Translations under genes and position numbers: made by a program
Part shown: positions 1 to 56,804 of the stretch, piece after piece
Numbering within the stretch: position 1 is the first letter of the stretch
Layout of the letters: the number at the start of each line of letters is the position of its first letter
The notes under the pieces: model-generated
Seen by the model: only the letters and a program-made list of their open reading frames with translations
Told to the model about the DNA's origin: nothing
Databases searched by the model: none
DNA from: Mytilus californianus
Lineage: Eukaryota
Direction of reading: 5' to 3'
Length of the DNA stretch: 64,000 bases
Assembly: GCF_021869535.1 (NCBI RefSeq)
Contig: NW_026262712.1
Location: forward strand, 27,218,001-27,282,000

Positions 1-83
1 CTGAACATCTTCCTCCATGTAGAGTTTGTGGAGAAAAGGCATCAGGACTCCATTATGGCGCTAATACATGTGAACCATGTAAG
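1..83 (+). CDS. NR-A coding exon 1, 3' part only (zinc finger 1: [27 protein letters not shown])
   Basis: C-X2-C-X13-C-X2-C nuclear receptor finger; phase-0 donor aag|gtaagt at 84; near-identical to NR-B 48670-48757. Confidence 0.95.
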
Positions 84-97
84 GTAAGTAACTTACA

Positions 98-166
98 CCA
101 TTTAGAGTTTGTGGAGAAAAGGCGTCAGGACTTCATTATGGCGCTAATACATGTGAACAATGTAAG
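98..166 (+). repeat. Degenerate tandem duplicate of the 3' end of the NR-A ZF1 exon, including its donor ([23 protein letters not shown]|gtaagt)
   Basis: Direct repeat of about 15-83; first Cys TGT>TTT; out of frame with exon 1. Confidence 0.9.
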
Positions 167-716
167 GTAAGTAGATGCATGAACATGAACTCAATTGTAT
201 AGTGTGACGGGATTGCTTCCCTTAGTAAATGTGTTAGATACTTAGTCAGTCGTAAGCGCTTGAGCAAAGGAAGTACTGATTTAGCGCTGTCGGTATACGC
301 GCTGCCTTGTAACACAGAGGTCCCGGTGCAAACAAGCAAGCAATCTTTTAAAGAAATTTATGCTCTCCGGTTACAATTATATAGTTTAGCATGTGGCATG
401 GATTGCGTACTGTTATATGACACTGGAACATCTAGTACTTTTTACTTAAGACTTAAGGAAAGGAGATCACATCGTCCTCATTGTTACACAAACTGAGGTT
501 TTATTAAATAAGTTAGACGGTATTCGTTAGTGGTAGACCGGGAACAAAGATCAATGTATTCTGTTGCAATTAGTTTCATTAGCTACAACTGAATGAAATG
601 CACAAAGATTATGCACTGATAAAAACAAATTATCAACTCTTACAGAACTGTTATCTATACTTTGACGTCATGAAACGGGCTTATACAAGTATACACATTT
701 TGTTATCACTACTATA

Positions 717-901
717 AAAATAAACTAACCGTTTGAATGGTTTTACACTAGTCATTTTTGTGGCTCTTTATAGCTTGTTGTTCGGCCAATTAAGGCTCCG
801 TGTTGAAGACCGTACTTTGACCTATAATGGTTTACTTTTACAAATTGTGACTTTAATGGAGAGTTGTTTCATTGGCACTCATGCCAAATCTTCTTATATC
901 T
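717..901 (-). repeat. Copy of a very abundant interspersed repeat (ggagagttgtctcattggca...cacatcttctt end); relatives at about 2186, 6230, 6820, 17462, 22620, 50650, 54190, 54935
   Basis: Reverse complement of 17470-17650; many similar copies in the window. Confidence 0.75.
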
Positions 902-1198
902 AACATACAATATTAGAAGAGAATATACAGTTACTAGGAAACCATTTCATGTCTGGGATAATTATTAATACGATTGTATTGAATGTCATTTAATTTAATG
1001 ATTAAAGAAAATACCCCTCTTTGATAAAAACGATGTCTGACGAGAGATCTTACACGCTAACCATGTTAACTCTAAGAGCCTTATGAGAAACGTGAGAAAA
1101 TGTTTTTTCTTTCGAAATTTGGTTTTTTACTTTTACAAAACATACAGTAACTATGGCTTACAATATCAATACTTCAAACAAGAAATTTATGTAATTTG

Positions 1199-4100
1199 TA
1201 TGGAACGCCACAGCTGTCTTATGTGGAACTCTGATATTACTTTATGTTGTTTTATTATTACTTGATGATATTTTGTCTTTACTTAATATGGTTTTGACAT
1301 TACGTAATGATGTTTTGATATAACTCAATATGGAATAGTCATTACTTAATGATATTTCGATATTACACGATATGGTTTCGTATTGATTTGATATAGTTTT
1401 GTCATTACTCAATATGGTTTTGTCATTACTCGATGTGGTTTCACCATTATTTAATGTGGTTGTGTCATTAGTCAATGTGGTTTTAACATTACTTGATGTG
1501 AATGTGACTTAACGTTATGTAGTTGTTTCATTACATGATGTGGTTTTGTTATTTCGTAATGATGATTTGCCTATTCTTTATATGGTTTTAACATTACGTA
1601 ATGATGTTTCAAAATTTGACGATTTTACACTACATGATGTGTTTGTTTCATTATTTGATGTGGTCCTGTCATTCTTTGATGTGGTTATCCCATTACTTGA
1701 TGAGGTAAAATCACGTGACCAATTCGGAAAAACCTGTTCTATTTTTAGATAGATTTCCATGTTGTATGTGCCTTGGATGAGTGTGGCCATCCATCGAATT
1801 AGAGTTCAAATTAAAGTTCGGGTTACTGTTTGAGTTAAATTTTGAGTTAGACTTCGATTTCGAATTAAATTTGTTATTATAATTAAAGTTTTAGTTAGCA
1901 TTGAGCTTCGAGTTGGACTTCGAGTTTGAGTCACATTTAAAGGTAGAGTTCGAGTTACAACATTAAATTTGAGTCACTTTATGAGGTAGAGTTTTAGTAA
2001 GATTCGAATTTAAGTCTCATTTAGATTAATTAAGATTTTGAGTTGAAATTCGAGCTATCTCATATGAGTTCGTAATTAAATTTTCTATCGCGGAACAAGG
2101 ACTTTTGCTCGGGCTTCCGAAAAGGTATGCGTACAAAAGATAAACAATGTTACAGTATACATAACGCAACATAGAAGTTGAAATAAAGTTAGATGTGGTG
2201 TGATTGACAATGAGACAACTATCCACCAGAGTTAAAATGCAGTGGATATAAGAAATTATATATAGGCAACCGTACAGCCTTCAACACACCGTATAGTCAG
2301 CTACAAAAGGCCACCATGCACCATGTGAAAAAATTCAAACGAAAAAACAAACGGTCTTATTTATAAATAAACAATCTACAAAAAAAATGACATACATTTA
2401 TACAACGACAACAATTGAACTTCATGCACCTCTGTTGGGGCAGGTACATAAAGAAAGTGCACGTGGCGGAGTTTAACATGTATGTGAGCGCTAAATCCTA
2501 ACCTTACATCGGACTTTTACAGTTGTGTAACAGCACAACACGAGAACAAAAATGTAAACTAGACAAAATGATGCCCCCGCACTCAACTCATTTAACCGCT
2601 TATATCCCAAAAATGACAAAAAAAAGTTCAATTATCTCCCAAAAGAGCAAAAGATAATAAAAATAAAAACCCTGACCACATGCACACCTTCAATATATGT
2701 ACAAACAGACAGTGAAGAGAAAACTTCCTAGAATTCAAACTGTGGGAGGAGTTATGCGGAATAACTATATACCCATAATGGGACGGACGGACAGACGGAC
2801 GGACAGACGGACGGACGGACGGACAGAAGTAAAACAATACGCCCCCCCTGACTTTCAGTTGCGGTGGCATACAGAACAGTTTCATTTGGCTGATTCAATA
2901 GATCGGTATGACTGGGTAATATAAATCCATCGGGGTGATCTCGGATGCTCCAGAAAGGCACCCGTCGTGTTATTCGAGAAAGTACAAACCGAGTGATTTG
3001 GTTTTATTTGGTAGTTTACATTCAAGGAAAAGATGACGGTATTATGGTTACGACCACTGGAACATGTCCGTCGTCACATGTGAAACAGATATTCCAAAAA
3101 GTTTATTTTTCAATTAGTGCGAGGTAGATCAGGGAATTCAATTGATAAATAAAAGATTGATATTCGTATAAGTTCAAATGATCATTTATGCTAAAAAAAA
3201 TTCGGAGAATTCTTATTTTATAGTATTGATGCTTTGTCGCTTAGTCCGAGCCCCCCTCCCCCCGTTTCCCCGTAACTTTAGTGTGAGTAGATTTGAAGTG
3301 TTTCATTTGTGAACAATAAAGTTCAAGTCTTTTGATTTGTGTCGAGCCTGCGACATCAATGTATCGGCAGTGAGACACAACAAACTTATATTTCGTCGTC
3401 GATAGTGGTGTCGGCGTCTCCATCTCCATTTTTTTTTTTTATTTATATTGAGTTTAACCTTTCATTTTACATGTTACTAAACATGTATGCCATCATAATT
3501 TTGTACTTTTAGAATATCATACTGTATTTGTTTACCTCGACTATTGTATCTGTATTTATATTGTATGTTTCTCTGTAAACTTGTATTTAGTTTTAGAGAA
3601 TAAAGTATCTATCTATCTATCTATAGATCGTTAGGTTTCTAGTTTTTTACATTTTTCATTTCGGGACCTTTTATAGCTTACACTATAGGGTATGGGTTTT
3701 GCTCATTGTTGAAAACCATACAGTTTTGTTTTAGTTAAATAAAACCGAATTAAACTGTTTTGACATGATAAATTTGTAAACCTGCATGAAGTGTTTTAAA
3801 ACTTGTATAGAAGTTATTCCTCAATTTCAAGAAAAAGCATCTACAGAAAAACATTTTTTTTTTCGATAAATGTATAGATAAATGTACAGCCGATCATCAT
3901 GACGCTTTTACACTTACATCAGCAATATCAGGCGAGACACAGGGTTCCGTGGAATATTTTACAAATTTATTACAAAAATACTGCTTCCGTTTGAGAACTT
4001 AGGATAAAAACAACAGGACCAAGTGGTTTGGGGATATCCCAATTATGTCCGAAATACTGTAAACTTTTTAATACTTTCTTTCTTATTATTATCTGCCGTT

Positions 4101-4770
4101 CCCTTTTTTCATACCAAATAACTCTGAACAACCACTCGAACTTTAATTTGAACTTTAACTCAATGGATAGCAATACCCATCCAAAGCACATTAAACAAAC
4201 GATATATTGAAATCTGTTTAAAAATAGAACATATTTTTTCCGAATTGGTCACGTGGTTTTACCTCATCAAGTAATGAGATAACCACATCAAAGAATGACA
4301 GGACCACATCAAATAATGAAACAAACATATCATGTAGTGTAAAATCGTCAAATTTTGAAACATAATTGCGTAATGTTAAAACCATATAAAGAATAGGCAA
4401 ATTATCATTACGAAATAACAAAACCACATCATGTAATGAAACAACTACATAACGTTAAGTCACATTCACATCAAGTAATGTTAAAACCACATTGACTAAT
4501 GACACAACCACATTAAATAATGGTGAAACCACATCGAGTAATGACAAAACCATATTGAGTAATGACAAAACTATATCAAGTCAATATATGAAACCATATC
4601 ATGTAATATCGAAATATCATTAAGTAATGACTATTCCATATTGAGTTATATCAAAACATCATTACGTAATGTTAAAACCATATTAAGTAAAGACAAAATA
4701 TCATCAAGTAATAATAAAACAACATAAAGTAATATCAGAGTTCCACATAAGACAGCTGTGGCGTTCCATA
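1199..4770. mobile_element. Non-autonomous DNA element with about 560-630-bp TIRs built of 21-bp tandem repeats; termini TATGGAACGCC...GGCGTTCCATA; 6-bp TSD AATTTG (IS3EU-like, from recalled TAY..RTA/6-bp rule)
   Basis: Arms 1199-~1830 and ~4125-4770 are reverse complements; TSD at 1193-98 and 4771-76; absent from the orthologous NR-B intron. Confidence 0.8.
2557..2872 (+). mobile_element. HINE/pearl-like element with (ggac/agac)n microsatellite, nested in the large TIR element
   Basis: Microsatellite 2781-2826 followed by a stem-loop-like end. Confidence 0.65.
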
Positions 4771-4820
4771 AATTTGAGTGAATGTTACAGGATAATACAA
4801 ATATAACTAATGTATTTCAG

Positions 4821-4977
4821 GGTTTCTTTCGTCGCAGCATAGTCAAAATAGAAAAGAAGAAGGAAAAATACGTATGTGCTAAAGGAGATGAATCATGTAA
4901 GCTTGGAACTGGAAAACGGACAATGTGTTCCTATTGTAGATATAAAAAATGTCTAGATATAGGAATGTCACACAATG
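4821..4977 (+). CDS. NR-A exon 2 (GFFRRS...zinc finger 2...GMSHN)
   Basis: tttcag acceptor, g|gtaag donor; CAKGDESC-X9-CSYC-RYKKCL; within ORF 4782-5111. Confidence 0.95.
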
Positions 4978-5708: not shown

Positions 5709-5938
5709 CTATTAAAATTGGAAGGTATACCCACGAAAAGAGAACCAAAGATATAACAGAGGTCAGAAAGTTAAAACTAAAAGAAAATCAGACAGTTGAT
5801 ACGACATCACTTGATGTAATGGAACAGGAAGTTGATGAATTAGTGGCGCGATTGATTGTTATCCAGGAAGAATTCTGTGCCGATTTTAGAACATGTTTTC
5901 AACCAGGTGGCCTTCTTGAAAAGCATAAGTTTGTTTAT
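5709..5938 (+). CDS. NR-A exon 3 (C-terminal extension/hinge AIKIGRYTHEKRTKD...)
   Basis: tttcag acceptor, phase 1 to 0, tat|gtatgt donor; paralog of 53772-54001. Confidence 0.9.
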
Positions 5939-7287: not shown

Positions 7288-7516
7288 GAAAGATTCAAAC
7301 TAAAAACGGAAACATTTGGTAACCTTGCTGCAGTACCATGGAGTACTTACAATGAATTCCTATCTGCAACTGGAATGGAACTTGACGATAGAAAAAGTCG
7401 GATGAACATTATAGCAGCACGAATGGAACAAGCCGTTCGGAACATGGTTAATTTTGCAAGAAATATACCGGGTTTTTCTGATCTTCAGACGCCAGATCAG
7501 CTAGCTTTACTTAAAG
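7288..7516 (+). CDS. NR-A exon 4 (LBD H3-H4: MVNFARNIPGFSDLQTPDQLALLK)
   Basis: NR LBD signature F-X2-IPGF-X2-L-X3-DQ-X2-LLK; canonical splice sites, phase 0 to 1. Confidence 0.95.
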
Positions 7517-8592: not shown

Positions 8593-8823
8593 CTGGTTAC
8601 TTGGAATACTGCCTTATTGGAGGGCATACTAGAGTTAACACAACTCTCAAAGTATTTGCAGGTGCTCTTGAAGTACCAATATTCGGATTACATTTTTCTC
8701 AGATTACACATTTGGAACCAAAAGTCTTAGACCAGATTTTAGATTTTGCCACCAGTTTTCAAAAGTGTCAGTTAACAGTCGAAGAAGTTACACTTGCACG
8801 AGCGATTGTCATTACATTTAGTG
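8593..8823 (+). CDS. NR-A exon 5 (LBD H5-H8: AGYLEYCL...LTVEEVTLARAIVITFS)
   Basis: tttcag acceptor at 8591-92, g|gtatgg donor; phases join to give LLKAGYLE and FSDR. Confidence 0.93.
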
Positions 8824-47700: not shown

Positions 47701-48340
47701 GCATTTAAAGGATAGCACATTTCGCTAGCCAAGGGTTTTGATCCAGTCCCCTCGAGGACAATGCCTGGCGACCACTGCACCAACAAAAAAATCTCATTAT
47801 CAGAATGTCATAACACATATAAACTAAGGATTTTATCCAAGGATATAATGCTAAGTTCACAACACGACATAAACATCTATGTATACACTTTTTCTATGTA
47901 TGCGAAGATCAGTTCCATCACCACAGCCATATATACACCGAAACGGTTCATGCAAACCACAAACCACGACCCATATAATGTTAATAATAAATCACTACGT
48001 AGATCACTGTATAAGTCTTTGCATTGCAGAAGTCCACTTTGGTAGAAGTATAAAAAAGCCTCCAAATGATAAATTTTACAACATATGATCAGAAATCAAT
48101 GATTCAAAGTCGGAAAGTCATGAAAAAATAATAATGTTTTGAAATTACACAAGTAAAACCATCCAAATTCCCACAAAAACATTTTGTGCGATTCACGTGA
48201 CTCTCTATTTACGTATATCATTGATGTAATTCATAACTTAAGTAGAGAATGGTGTCTAAGCGAATCTCGAGTGTTTATTTTACGAAAGTCGAAATTTGAT
48301 TATTAGATATAATTTTCAGATTGAGTGTACAGATATTATC

Positions 48341-48757
48341 ATGGATAGCCAGAATATGGATTTTTTAGATTCATCATTGCTAACTCCCGACCTAACATCT
48401 GACACAGACTTATTCTTTGGTATTGCTGACTTAGCGCTATCTGATAGCTCACCAAATCACTTATCATTTAATTCAATATGTATGTCAGTGTTAGACAAAG
48501 AGCTATCCTGTAGTTCTTCCGCAGATAGTGGTAAAGGGGAATCGGAAGATTCGGAAACAATACATAGAGGAGAATCGGAAGATTCGGAACCGGTACATGA
48601 AGAAAAATCGAAAGATTCGAAAGTGGCACAGAAACCGCCAAAGAAAAAGCATCACAAAAATCAACCGCCTGATGCTGAACATCTTCCGCCATGTAGAGTT
48701 TGTGGAGAAAAGGCATCGGGACTTCATTACGGCGCTAATACATGTGAACCATGCAAG
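48341..48757 (+). CDS. NR-B coding exon 1, copy a (A/B region + zinc finger 1); exon acceptor at 48319, exon 48320-48757
   Basis: MDSQNMDF...[22 protein letters not shown]; tttcag acceptor; aag|gtaagt donor. Confidence 0.9.
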
Positions 48758-49818
48758 GTAAGTAGATGAAACATTAACTCAATTGTATTATACAGTTTAC
48801 CATGTGGTATGGATTGCAAACTATTTTATGAGATTGGGACTACTGAAGTCTTTAACTCATTTTTTTGTGAAAAGTAGTATAACATCAGCCTCATTGTAAG
48901 AAAAACTTACTAATAGTTTATTTGAAATAAGTTTGCAGGTATTCCGAGAGGATTCACATTATATTTCAATTGAAGATCTCTGTAAAATATTTAGGGTAAA
49001 TGATGCATTTTCACATTTGTACTAAATTGACATTTACGCTTCACGAGAATTAACCATATTGTGGTTATAACTGATTCAAATCTTTCAATTACTTTTAATC
49101 ATTTGTTAAGCTAAACACTTTTGGTATCAATAGTTATTTTTATTTAAGTATTGGTTAAAGCGCCTATATATCATTTTTAACATATCAGGTTTTTCTTGAG
49201 CAGCAGCCATTTTAAAACCAGTATAAAATTGAAAAAAAAATGCCTGGCGACCACTGCACCAACAAAAAAATCTCATTATCAGAATGTCATAACACATATA
49301 AACTAAGGATTTTATCCAAGGATATAATGCTAAGTTCACAACACGACATAAACATCTATGTATACACTTTTTCTATGTATGCGAAGATCAGTTCCATCAC
49401 CACAGCCATATATACACCGAAACGGTTCATGCAAACCACAAACCACGACCCATATAATGTTAATAATAAATCACTACGTAGATCACTGTATAAGTCTTTG
49501 CATTGCAGAAGTCCACTTTGGTAGAAGTATAAAAAAGCCTCCAAATGATAAATTTTACAACATATGATCAGAAATCAATGATTCAAAGTCGGAAAGTCAT
49601 GAAAAAATAATAATGTTTTGAAATTACACAAGTAAAACCATCCAAATTCCCACAAAAACATTTTGTGCGATTCACGTGACTCTCTATTTACGTATATCAT
49701 TGATGTAATTCATAACTTAAGTAGAGAATGGTGTCTAAGCGAATCTCGAGTGTTTATTTTACGATGTCGAAATTTGATTATAAGATATAATTTTCAGATT
49801 GAGTGTACAGATATTATC

Positions 49819-50235
49819 ATGGATAGCCAGAATATGGATTTTTTGGATTCATCATTGCCAACTCCCGACCTAACATCTGACACAGACTTATTCTTTGGTA
49901 TTGCTGACTTAGCGCTATCTGATAGCTCACCAAATCACTTATCATTTAATTCAATATGTATGTCAGTGTTAGACAAAGAGCTATCCTGTAGTTCTTCCGC
50001 AGATAGTGGTAAAGGGGAATCGGAAGATTCGGAATCAATACATAGAGGAGAATCGGAAGATTCGGAACCGGTACATGAAGAAAAATCGAAAGATTTGAAA
50101 GTGGCACAGAAACCGCCAAAGAAAAAGCATCACAAAAATCAACCGCCTGATGCTGAACATCTTCCGCCATGTAGAGTTTGTGGAGAAAAGGCATCGGGAC
50201 TTCATTACGGCGCTAATACATGTGAACCATGCAAG
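49819..50235 (+). CDS. NR-B coding exon 1, copy b (exon 49798-50235)
   Basis: Near-identical tandem copy, open frame, intact splice sites; L>P, T>S and S>L relative to copy a. Confidence 0.9.
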
Positions 50236-51539
50236 GTAAGTAGATGAAACATTAACTCAATTGTATTATACAGTTTACCATGTGGTATGGATTGCAAACT
50301 ATTTTATGAGATTGGGACTACTGAAGTCTTTAACTCATTTTTTTGTGAAAAGTAGTATAACATCAGCCTCATTGTAAGAAAAACTTACTAATAGTTTATT
50401 TGAAATAAGTTTGCAGGTATTCCGAGAGGATTCACATTATATTTCAATTGAAGATCTCTGTAAAATATTTAGGGTAAATGATGCATTTTCACATTCGTAC
50501 TAAATTGACATTTACGCTTCACGAGAATTAACCATATTGTGGTTATAACTGATTCAACGCTCATATAGTCAACTACTGCACAATGTTCTGTTTGGACTCT
50601 CGATATTAATTTCCACCTTTATTTAGTTTCGCAATAATTATTTAAAGAAGAAGATGTGGTATAATTGCCAACAAGACAACTCTGCACAAGAGAACAAAAT
50701 GACACAGAAATTAACAACTATAGGTCACCGTACGTCCTTCAACAATGAGCAAACTCATATCGCATAGTCAGCTATAAAAGGTCCCGAAATGACAAATGTA
50801 AAACAATTCAAACGAAAAAAACTAACGGCCTAATTTATGTACAAAATAATGAAAAACAAATATGATACACAGAAATAAACGACAACCATGCACTGAATTA
50901 CAGGCTCGTGACCTTGTGTGGTTATTCTAAAAGAGTTCATGAATGCTAAATTAAAGTATAAACTCTGCAGACTCATTTACAAATCAAAGGACTTGTTAAA
51001 TTTGTTAGTGGTAGACCGGGAACAAACATCAATTAATTCCATCAAAAAAACTTTCATTACCTACAATTGAAATGCACTAAAGTTATGCACTCTTACAGAA
51101 CCGTTATCTATACTTTTGACGTCATGAAATGAGCTTATTCATGTATAAATGTTTTGTTGCCATTCATGTAAAAAGACCTAACATACACTATTGGAATAGT
51201 ACATTATGGATATACAGTTACTAGGCAACCATTCTCAGATTAGGCTAATGTTTGATTCCTATTGTTTTGAATATCATTTAATTCAATGATTAAAGAAAAA
51301 AATACTTTTAACACTGACATCTCACCCCTCCAAAATTTGCTCTTAGTGGTGTCTGACGAGAGATCTGACATACAGATGACCATAGTTTTATAACCAAGTT
51401 AACTCTGGGAGTCTTATGAAAAACGCGAGAAAACGTAAATATGGCTTTCAATATCTATTACTGCAACAGCACATTTCAGGAAACGGTATATGATTTTGGT
51501 GAATGTTACAGGAAAATGCAAATAAAGCTATTTTTTCAG

Positions 51540-51696
51540 GGTTTCTTTCGTCGCAGCATAGTCAAGATAGAAAAGAAAAATGAGAAATACGTTTGTGCTA
51601 AAGGAGATGAATCATGCAAACTTGGGACTGGAAAACGGACAATGTGTTCCTATTGTAGATATAAAAAATGTCTAGATGTAGGAATGTCACACGGAG
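51540..51696 (+). CDS. NR-B exon 2 (zinc finger 2)
   Basis: 157 nt as in NR-A exon 2; GFFRRSIVKIEKKNEKYVCAKGDESC...CLDVGMSHG. Confidence 0.95.
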
Positions 51697-53327
51697 GTAA
51701 GATAAATGTGCTTATATCGAATGTTTAAGTGAAGCAGGATCTACTTAATCTGCTGGAGCACATTCCGTGGGATTCGTGTTGCTCAGTCTTTAGTTTTCCA
51801 TGCTGTGTTGTGTATGCTGTTGTTTGTCTGTTTGTCGTTTATCGTTTTTTTTTGCCATGGCATTGTCAATGTGTTTTCGACTTCTGAGTTTTTCTATCCC
51901 TTTGGTATCCTTTGCCGCTCTTTTCTGATTTAGTTGAGGGCCTACTGCCTTGGTTGTTGCTATGTGACCTCAGTGATAAATTAGGTATAACAAAATATAT
52001 ATATTTGGGTTTCGTATCCTTTATTATTTCTGGCAGCATTATTCGAGCTTACGAGATGTACGATTGGTTGTACGGGATGTATAATTACATAGACACCTCC
52101 AGTCTAAATTTTGACTTTAAGGATGTAGTTAGGTGAAATTAAAAAAGCTAGAATTTAAAATTGATACTATAAGTCAGAAGAGCATTAGTAAAGGAACAAA
52201 TTAAGCTAAAAATATTGATAGGTTGAGCTCCTTCTTGCGATATTTGATTTTTTTTACATGGCGGGAAGAGGCTTACTCGGACTTTAACCTTATATTTAGC
52301 ATTGGCATTATTTGGGTCTCAAATCGTAAGAAAAAAAAACAAACTAGAATCTGCTAAAATTTTGGTAAAGACCTTTTTATGAACTATTGAAGTCTTCTGT
52401 GAAAAGAATAGTGGGTTATATGGGGCAAAATATTTTACCCTGTATCAAAGGAAAAAACCCAAGAAGTCCAAACATCTGACAAAAATTCATAAACCTATTC
52501 TTAAATCCGATGTCGCATTTTGACGTGGTATACATTTCTTACACGTATCATTTTGTTAACATATATTACCTTATAATTCTGAAAATGAACTGAACATCAT
52601 AAAGTTCCATACCAAATATAAAATCACACCTTAAAACCGAATTTGAGTAATATGTAGAAACCTCTCGGAATTTTGGGTCCGCAATGCTCGACAACCTCGC
52701 ACTTTATTGGGTCTTTTTTTTAAACTTTTTTGATTGCAGCGTCATTGATGAGTCTTTTGTAGATGAAACGTCATTATGCAGCATACCATCAACTCCCCTG
52801 TGTGGGGAAATGACAAAAGAAAACGCAAGGCTTATTTCATGACATCTACCTAACAATCTACACCTAGTAAAAAAAAATACAGATGAAAGATCATTATTTG
52901 ATTGAGACCAACATAGAAGATATTTTTGTTATTGTCTGTTTGATTTATTTACGGACGTGTGTCGAACCACGTGTTATCGACCGTCATAGAAAATACGCCA
53001 ATCATTTCATTCTAAATTCAGTTGATTGCGACTCGTTAGCGCCTGCTGGTAACCTTCATAATAGAATTAGCATCAACCATCCATCTTTTGTGTGTGAATG
53101 AGAAAGAAGGAAAAGGGAGGGGGGCTTTTTATTAAAAAAATAATGTTTTGATTGTGGAAATGTGCGATACAAAGTATAATTTTCATTTTTTTTTTCGTTT
53201 TAAAAATGTAAAGTTTGCAAAGGTTATATTCTGAAAATTAAAAAGCTCTGAAAATTGCTAGAAATCTTAGATGTATGCATATTCTAAAAATTCTTCAAAA
53301 TGTCAGAACGATTGGTCAACTTCAAAA

Positions 53328-53771: not shown

Positions 53772-54001
53772 CTATTAAAATTGGAAGGTATACCCACGAA
53801 AAGAGAACCAAAGATATAACAGAGGTCAACAAATTAAAACTAAAAGAAAATCAGACAGTTGATACGACATCAGTTGATGTAACGGAACAGGAAGTTGATG
53901 AATTAGTGGCGCGTTTGATTGTTATCCAGGAAGAATTCTGTGCTGATTTTAGAACATGTTTTCAACCAGGTGGCCTTCTTGAAAGGCAGACGTCTATTTA
54001 T
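53772..54001 (+). CDS. NR-B exon 3 (CTE/hinge)
   Basis: 230 nt, canonical AG/GT; AIKIGRYTHEKRT...LLERQTSIY. Confidence 0.92.
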
Positions 54002-55401: not shown

Positions 55402-55630
55402 GAAAGATTCAAAGAAAAAATTGAAACATTTGGTAATCTTGTCGCATTACCATGGAGTGTTTACAATGAATTTCTATCTACAACTGGAATGGAACTTGAC
55501 GATAGAAAAAGTCATATGAACATCATAGCAGCACGAATGGAAGAAGCCGTTCGAAACATGGTTAGTTTTGCAAGACATATACCGGGTTTTTCTGATCTTC
55601 AGACGCCAGATCAACTAGCTTTACTGAAAG
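55402..55630 (+). CDS. NR-B exon 4 (LBD H3-H4)
   Basis: 229 nt; ERFKEKIETF...FARHIPGFSDLQTPDQLALLK. Confidence 0.95.
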
Positions 55631-56570: not shown

Positions 56571-56804
56571 CTGGTTACATGGAATATTGCCTTCTTGGAG
56601 CGCATACTAGAATCAACCCAATTCTCAAAGTATTTTCAGCTGCTCGTGAAGTACCAATACTCGGAACACATTTTTCTGAAATTACACATTTATTGGAACC
56701 AAAAGTCATAGACCAGGTGTTAGATTTTGCAACCAGTATTCAGAAGTGTCGGTTAACAGTCGAAGAAGTAACACTTGCACGAGCGATTGTCATTACATTT
56801 AGTG
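56571..56804 (+). CDS. NR-B exon 5 (LBD H5-H8)
   Basis: 234 nt, one codon longer than NR-A; canonical splice sites. Confidence 0.93.

Follow-up and report, generated by a model that had tools for sequence, protein, structure and literature searches.

The closest described relatives of the genes treated here belong to NR1P, a bivalve expansion of nuclear receptor (NR) subfamily 1, which was named by Vogeler et al. 2014 (PMC4070562) with eleven oyster genes, several of which have consecutive accession numbers. In that work, NR1P adjoins NR1C/D/E/F, NR1P10 and NR1P11 form a distinct subgroup, and the P-box, linker and D-box of NR1P are not described. NR1P is a large expansion of orphan receptors in bivalves, and mussels and oysters are sentinel species for endocrine-disrupting pollutants. 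Here, a stretch of 64,000 nucleotides of the Mytilus californianus genome (assembly GCF_021869535.1, contig NW_026262712.1, positions 27,218,001 to 27,282,000; hereafter the window) was analysed. It contains two tandem paralogous NR genes on the + strand, copy A and copy B, whose DNA-binding domain (DBD) departs from the CEGCKG type in its P-box, its D-box and its inter-finger linker.

The two genes are read here as expressed, tandemly duplicated orphan NRs of the NR1P11-like branch, with an intact DBD whose oddities were inherited stepwise, and this reading is given a probability of roughly 0.78. The DBD signature is a conserved, apparently undescribed variant within the known NR1P group. The full-text literature search returned no paper for CEPCKG and, for CEACKG, only a paper on rotifer 2DBD receptors; shorter forms of the P-box motif led to one relevant paper, on Gyrodactylus CEPCKVFFKR; NR1P together with Mytilus was found only in the 2014 paper and a review, and a Biomphalaria/Lottia nuclear receptor paper mentions neither NR1P nor these P-boxes.

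Two expressed paralogs with an intact DNA-binding domain

The two genes were located by a six-frame motif scan and a self-comparison of the window, which is AT-rich (31–36% GC) and contains 0 N and no assembly gaps. GT..AG exon models were fitted such that the spliced translation is a substring of a database protein. The spliced translation of copy A is an exact substring of P0151 (XP_052065230.1, Mytilus californianus, 530 aa), named "nuclear receptor subfamily 1 group D member 2-like" in RefSeq, and that of copy B comprises all 510 residues of P0160 (Mytilus californianus RefSeq, "NR1D1-like isoform X2"). Both genes are already predicted in RefSeq, and the names NR1D2-like and NR1D1-like are misleading. 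Pfam zf-C4 matches both DBD exons (exon 1, E 3.7e-9; exon 2, E 1.8e-11), and Hormone_recep matches exon 4 above the cut-off and exon 6 weakly; the Pfam scan gave no match for the exon 3 hinge and a sub-threshold chance match only for exon 5. The DBD is a C4-C4 double zinc finger with eight conserved Cys, and Hormone_recep, PDB sequence matches and an AF-2-like PLLLEMI point to a nuclear receptor ligand-binding domain (LBD).

In both paralogs the P-box is interrupted by an intron after CK (CEPCK|GFFRR), a position widely conserved in nuclear receptor genes, and reads CEPCKG. The Cys4-Cys5 stretch has 19 residues and the C-X6-C D-box (CAKGDESC) has six residues between Cys5 and Cys6, in comparison with 15–16 residues from Cys4 to Cys5 in the E75, Rev-erb-like, E78 and HR3 comparison proteins, where the D-box is five residues long in all rows except two HR3-like ones (six). 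In copy A, exon 1 ends with ...TGT GAA CCA TGT AAG|GTAAGT at 83 (phase-0 donor), and exon 2 opens with TTTCAG|GGT TTC TTT and encodes GFFRRSIVKIEKKKEKYVCAKGDESCKLGTGKRTMCSYCRYKKCLDIGMSHN, which consists of the helix remainder GFFRRS, a four-residue insert (IVKIEKKKEKYV), finger 2, the D-box and GMSHN. AIKIGRY forms the first residues of exon 3 at 5709, LLKAGYLE is encoded across the exon 4/5 junction, and these elements are shared by copy B. The first-pass annotation had named the split P-box of both paralogs, the long linker, the C-X6-C spacing, AIKIGR and LLKAGxLE; all are present as described, according to the residue counts, the RefSeq-matching translations and, for the P-box, the junction reads given below.

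Read depth over the copy B exons is 6–17 in the stranded RNA run X21, with reads solely in the + strand transcript orientation. Three reads span 50235>51540 (GT..AG), that is, the exon 1-exon 2 junction within CEPCK|GFFRR. The exon 2>exon 3 junction 51696>53772 is spanned by 19 copy-B-type reads, and 14 further exon 2>exon 3 reads represent copy A mRNA, with AAT at the junction and the copy-A letters at 51617, 51620, 51626 and 51678. Because the exon 2>exon 3 reads separate by paralog differences, both paralogs are transcribed and spliced as modelled.

The start-codon exon of copy B is itself duplicated in tandem. The repeat (48022-50557) has an offset of 1478 bp and an identity of 99.2% over 1058 bp; 4 bases distinguish the two exon copies, and the RNA reads show one haplotype at the sites separating them. 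In five reads of X21 and in contigs from three further runs, position 50235 is joined back to 49798 with the frame kept (...CEPCK-IECTDIIMDSQ...; 438 nt is a multiple of three), which may represent either one linear mRNA containing both exon copies or a circular RNA of one exon. In the linear case, the protein would gain a second A/B region together with a further CEPCK first finger.

Distribution of the features and their probable stepwise origin

The 52-residue product of exon 2 was searched against 1.84 billion representative proteins, of which 215 passed E 0.001, and the full-length M. coruscus relative P0004 was the query of a following word search. The DBD was extracted from every match, and 46 were aligned. 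The family has a signature that includes (V/A)NTCEACKGFFRRSL...Y.C.....C.I.PGKR..C..CRY.KC..VGMSK.AIKTGRYTHEKRT and is found in bivalves, gastropods, Octopus, the brachiopod Lingula, the annelids Capitella and Owenia, the nemerteans Lineus and Tubulanus, and the bryozoan Watersipora; no ecdysozoan or vertebrate ortholog was among the matches listed. All eight Cys and the base-contacting E, K, R and R of the recognition helix are invariant in the 46-sequence alignment.

The first-pass annotation had noted the P-box, the D-box and the linker in both paralogs, and each of them is real, although none is special to the pair. CEACKG and the AIKTGRYTHEKRT extension occur family-wide across Lophotrochozoa, oyster CgNR1P10 and CgNR1P11 included, and the departure from CEGCKG is thus old and, in the form of CEACKG, shared by the whole family. 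The four-residue insertion after FFRRSIVK is common to the scallop, oyster, ark-shell and mussel members, with 18–20 inter-finger residues. The C-X6-C spacing is one state of a labile D-box of 5, 6, 7 (scallops) or 8 (pulmonate snails) residues, scattered through the family. The survey of EPCKG P-boxes that the annotation had proposed leaves the change from Ala to Pro alone as specific to Mytilus, and yet it recurs in two Tegillarca granosa lineages, P0208 and P0059 (cluster with KAJ8298662.1). CEPCKG and AIKIGRY are found in 14/14 Mytilus members of one subclade, and the three features occur together in 14 distinct Mytilus proteins, the named ones from M. californianus, M. coruscus and M. galloprovincialis.

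The phylogenetic tree was computed from the LBD only, with no DBD columns, so that the DBD traits could not shape its topology, and support was assessed with the Shimodaira-Hasegawa-like approximate likelihood ratio test (SH-aLRT). The whole family separates from E75, Rev-erb-like, E78 and HR3 as a clade of 78 rows (SH-aLRT 100) of molluscs, a brachiopod, annelids, nemerteans and a bryozoan. Within it lie a long-linker clade of 27 rows (SH-aLRT 98) and the Mytilus CEPCKG clade of 14 rows (SH-aLRT 96), whose sister is a Mytilus CEACKG clade. By parsimony on this tree, P-box residue 2 requires at least 6 state changes, the long linker at least 2 and the D-box length at least 10, and the D-box length drifts freely in the family. 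When all CEPCKG rows were forced into one clade, a group named after the tree had been seen, the cost was 47 log-likelihood units (approximately unbiased (AU) test, p 5e-5). A single CEPCKG clade is thus rejected, and therefore the change from Ala to Pro arose more than once or was carried from one tandem copy to another by DBD-exon conversion.

The oyster members were identified by translating the published CgNR1P primers and seeking the peptides in the 332 collected proteins. P0187 and its cluster contain both CgNR1P10 primer peptides at a distance of 84 residues, in line with the published amplicon of 256 bp, and both CgNR1P11 primers match C. gigas P0175 (XP_011431632). For NR1P1-9, none of the 332 proteins contained a primer peptide pair, MgNR1G (ABU89802) was likewise absent from the set, and the comparison covers the P10/P11 branch. 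P0175 has CEACKG, 19 inter-finger residues and a six-residue D-box and lies inside the 27-row long-linker clade, and P0187 lies in a neighbouring clade; both are inside the 78-row clade together with the window genes (support 100). Since the CgNR1P10/P11 proteins fall in the same clade, the window genes belong to NR1P, in the NR1P11-like branch. The divergent lophotrochozoan NR1 lineage that had been proposed from the sequence is therefore borne out, and it is NR1P.

The three oddities appear from this comparison to be inherited clade characters, added stepwise. At the first step, Gly at P-box position 2 would have been replaced with Ala to give CEACKG in the whole family. At the second, four residues (SIVKxxxxKE) would have been gained in a pteriomorph bivalve subclade, corresponding to about one extra turn of the recognition helix in the structure prediction. 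At the third, Ala would have been replaced with Pro to give CEPCKG in the Mytilus clade, for which a single base change (GCN>CCN) would suffice; the Mytilus clade would also have changed AIKTGRY to AIKIGRY.

Some members of the family deviate individually. P0159 (M. coruscus, 695 aa) and P0005 (Tegillarca granosa, 955 aa) have two DBDs each, and P0316 (Tegillarca granosa, 798 aa) is far longer than its cluster mates of 505-521 aa; these three models appear to join neighbouring tandem paralogs. The P-box CEPCKD is seen in one M. coruscus DBD. P0226 (Pinctada) and the Mytilus proteins P0250, P0251 and P0257 form a sister pair within the family clade, with the P-box CESCKG and the extension AIQMGRV, and they may correspond to other NR1P members; Mytilus proteins among P0250, P0251 and P0257 are annotated as NR1F1 or ROR-gamma.

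Constraint and predicted structure of the DBD

The ratio of nonsynonymous to synonymous substitution rates (dN/dS) between copy A and copy B was estimated using the Nei-Gojobori method. The value is 0.09 for the DBD with the GRIP box, where 3/81 amino acids differ, none of them in the P-box or D-box, 0.93 for the hinge (10/79) and 0.32 for the LBD (25/228). The DBD is under strong purifying selection, which speaks for a functional modified head. The three DBD features are not due to chance, because they recur in 14 distinct Mytilus proteins and the DBD has the low dN/dS given above. As a separate observation, exon 5 of the LBD (8593-8823 vs 56571-56804) is the least alike between the paralogs in tblastn, at 76% vs 83–93% in the other shared exons; together with the hinge figures, this points to divergence of the ligand pocket or the hinge after duplication.

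An AlphaFold model was computed for residues 137-235 of P0151 with the 46-sequence alignment. The mean predicted local distance difference test (pLDDT) value is 84, and a continuous helix 1 is predicted at residues 25-40 with a pLDDT of about 91-92. This helix has 16 residues, running from the Glu of the P-box through the four inserted residues, which would add roughly one extra turn to the recognition helix. In the Foldseek search, the model matches the DBDs of ROR, RXR, RAR, PPAR-gamma and Rev-erb at 1.5-2.5 A. The predicted fold is thus that of a canonical DBD with an extended recognition helix. The two-zinc-finger NR domain is intact, with all eight Cys kept, and both DBD and LBD are those of a constrained, expressed NR.

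Functional interpretation and alternatives

Because the eight Cys and the base-contacting Glu, Lys and Arg-Arg are kept, the window receptors would most likely still bind AGGTCA-like half-sites, as seen in solved complexes of Rev-erb, ROR and PPAR. In the adjacent minor groove, the 5' flank would be read by the extension AIK(T/I)GRYTHEKRT (AIKIGRYTHEKRT region), which is strongly conserved, much as in these three receptors. The altered response-element specificity proposed in the first-pass annotation is still a hypothesis: P-box residue 2 and the longer, Lys-rich helix may tune the preference for half-site, flank or spacing, for which the odds are roughly even. A more far-reaching proposal, which we regard as unlikely, is that the steps from EGCKG to EACKG, to the extra helical turn and to EPCKG (in mussels and ark shells independently) changed half-site or spacing preference and let the tandem family partition its targets; inclusion of the duplicated exon of copy B, adding a second first finger with its P-box, would then be a possible snapshot of the origin of multi-DBD receptors.

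The alternative that survives best is that the substitutions are functionally silent: the proline, the four residues and the six-residue D-box would be neutral, and the receptors would use the same AGGTCA-type elements and arrangements as their CEACKG and CEGCKG relatives. We consider this a serious possibility, somewhat short of even odds. Such neutrality has to be reconciled with the retention of Pro, once gained, in 14/14 Mytilus rows, and with its regain in Tegillarca within the same long-linker clade, as the AU test implies. Classical P-box swaps and steroid receptor P-box mutagenesis also show that position 2 contributes to half-site discrimination. However, the invariance of the base-contacting residues and the unchanged predicted fold favour a silent change, and the D-box, with at least 10 length changes on the tree, looks unconstrained. 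Moreover, Pro is found at position 2 in unrelated NR lineages (rotifer CEPCKG, 2DBD CLPCKS, CMPCKI, CSPCKG, Gyrodactylus CEPCKVFFKR), and since Pro or Ala occupies this position in several unrelated divergent receptors, it is at least tolerated.

It is very improbable that the altered head has lost sequence-specific DNA binding and that the proteins act on other receptors as partners, either independently of DNA or as dominant-negative dimer partners. In favour of such a loss, Pro takes away a backbone NH where the recognition helix begins; nevertheless, a dN/dS of 0.09 with the eight Cys and the base-contacting residues intact is unexpected for a non-binding DBD. Pro is tolerated in the first turn of a helix, and in the model the helix is retained with high confidence. 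Finally, the idea that genes with the proline P-box are in decay, as pseudogenes, or are artefacts of assembly or of mis-splicing in the models, which could appeal to the degenerate finger-1 pseudo-exon at 92-166 and to a possible assembly origin of the nearly identical tandem exon of copy B, is already contradicted by open reading frames identical to the RefSeq models in both copies, by spliced RNA reads from both paralogs, by the DBD constraint, and by the recurrence of this P-box in contigs of transcript size (1.5-2.2 kb, coding for about 500 aa) and in the annotations of three further species, and it has next to no credibility.

Several points weigh against the reading of the genes as expressed NR1P11-like receptors with stepwise-inherited features. 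The three exon 1>exon 2 reads are not assignable to copy A or copy B. The CgNR1P11 primers span about 620 nt in P0175, as against a published amplicon of 751 bp, which may reflect a difference of isoform or gene model. The tree was built without human NR1A/B/C/H/I references and CgNR1P1-9, and therefore the position of the family within NR1 rests on Vogeler et al. 2014 and on PDB similarity. The helix extension in the AlphaFold model is a prediction. The mechanism is inferred from homology, as the literature search brought up no data on DNA binding, ligands or dimerisation of NR1P proteins.

The whole P10/P11 branch has a non-EGCKG P-box, to which the mussels add a Pro variant under strong constraint, and this is a warning that the response elements of NR1P are not to be assumed from those of Rev-erb, ROR or PPAR. 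The public annotation of this one family is inconsistent, ranging over NR1D-, VDR-, RAR-alpha-, ROR-beta-, PPAR- and even mucin-5AC-like names. Atypical P-boxes in lineage-specific receptors are familiar from nematodes, flatworms and rotifers, and the present ones will be of little surprise to specialists.

Features of the locus

The coordinates of the two genes and their parts are given in Table 1. In copy A, intron 1 contains a degenerate tandem repeat of the finger-1 exon end. This pseudo-exon has lost the first Cys (PFRVC), has the P-box CEQCK and retains an AAG|GTAAGT donor of its own; at a distance of 89 nt after the real copy, it is not in frame with the true exon. The same intron (4.7 kb) is occupied in large part by an inverted repeat, 1199-1732 vs 4235-4770, with about 540 nt per arm and 98% complementarity. 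It is composed of adjacent pairs of 352 and 185 nt, each 98% complementary, with the arms about 2.5 kb apart, and stops about 50 nt upstream of the exon 2 acceptor. From its sequence it looks like a foldback or terminal inverted repeat-type insertion, and the corresponding intron of copy B (1.3 kb) is without it. In all runs examined, contig depth over two intron segments of copy B, 50582-50875 and 52052-52492, reaches the thousands, with numerous loose ends; the segments are high-copy repeats (transposable-element fragments) and do not belong to the gene.

Table 1. Positions in the window of the two NR1P genes and their parts.
Feature	Position	Strand	Evidence
Copy A gene	window start to ~11.2 kb	+	motif scan, self-comparison, exon models
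Copy A exon 1: 3' part of A/B and zinc-finger-1 exon, truncated by window start	3..83	+	zf-C4
Copy A decayed copy of finger-1 exon end, intron 1	92..166	+	pseudo-exon
Copy A exon 2	4821..4977	+	zf-C4; phase-1 donor
Copy A exon 3: C-terminal extension AIKIGRYTHEKRT (GRIP-box-like) and hinge	5709..5938	+	exon model
Copy A exon 4: LBD start (...NIPGFSDLQTPDQLALLK)	7288..7516	+	Hormone_recep
Copy A exon 5: LBD core (AGYLEYCLIGG...)	8593..8823	+	exon model
Copy A last exon: LBD C-terminus, AF-2-like PLLLEMI, stop codon	10941..11194	+	exon model
Copy B gene	~48.3 to 58.7 kb	+	motif scan, self-comparison, exon models
Copy B start-codon exon (ATG 48341; A/B domain and zinc finger 1, CEPCK), first tandem copy	48320..48757	+	acceptor 48320
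Copy B start-codon exon, second tandem copy	49798..50235	+	438 nt, in frame, splice sites intact
Copy B exon 2 (GFFRRSIVKIEKKNEKYVCAKGDESC...GMSHG)	51540..51696	+	junction reads
Copy B exon 3 (AIKIGRYTHEKRT and hinge)	53772..54001	+	junction reads, exon model
Copy B exon 4 (LBD)	55402..55630	+	exon model
Copy B exon 5 (LBD core)	56571..56804	+	exon model
Copy B last exon: LBD C-terminus, AF-2-like helix, stop codon	58448..58713	+	exon model

Comparison with known receptors

The first-pass annotation had placed the genes in the neighbourhood of NR1C, NR1D and NR1F, which agrees with the nearest solved relatives. The closest solved DBD sequence is PPAR-delta (2env), and the PDB sequence search with residues 250-530 gave 576 NR LBD matches, of which Rev-erb-beta (best, E 4e-17), ROR-beta and ROR-alpha are the closest, with E about 1e-17.

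Rev-erb/E75 (NR1D) resembles the window genes in the NR1-type DBD with FFRR, in the GRIP-box-like extension after GMS and in the best LBD match, but differs in its P-box CEGCKG, its extension AVRFGR, its 16 inter-finger residues and its five-residue D-box. The NR1D label of RefSeq is not supported, as the genes, with CEPCKG and AIKIGRY, lie outside the E75/Rev-erb clade (support 100). Unlike the vertebrate Rev-erbs, which are not known to have a helix 12, the window genes encode the AF-2-like PLLLEMI helix.

PPAR (NR1C) provides the best solved DBD match, and copy A has GMSHNAI at the end of the DBD, as PPAR does; PPAR differs in its P-box CEGCKG and its much shorter D-box. NR1C is excluded: the D-box has six residues here, and the alignment with PPAR-delta needs a 6-residue deletion relative to the window protein. 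Molluscs possess separate, true PPAR orthologs (PMC4388693).

The 2DBD receptors (NR7) share Ala or Pro in place of Gly at P-box position 2 in their first DBDs (CEACKK, CLPCKS) and have an inter-finger stretch of 16-21 residues, and Pro is also found in the rotifer Brachionus (CEPCKG-FFKR) and in Gyrodactylus (CEPCKVFFKR; PMC8363021). These receptors differ in belonging to unrelated lineages and in the residues that follow (K/S, FFIR/FFKR), and the likeness of the P-boxes is convergence, not kinship. Assignment to NR7 was rejected, as the RefSeq-identical models have one DBD and the exon 1-exon 1 junction would add only a second first finger.

The closest agreement is with the oyster genes. 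CgNR1P11 (EKC35897; P0175) has the same 19-residue inter-finger stretch, six-residue D-box and AIKxGRYT extension as the Mytilus genes, and CgNR1P10 (EKC35895) and CgNR1P11 share with them both the clade in the LBD tree and the arrangement in tandem arrays. The two oyster receptors differ in having CEACKG and AIKTGRY, whereas the Mytilus clade has CEPCKG and AIKIGRY.

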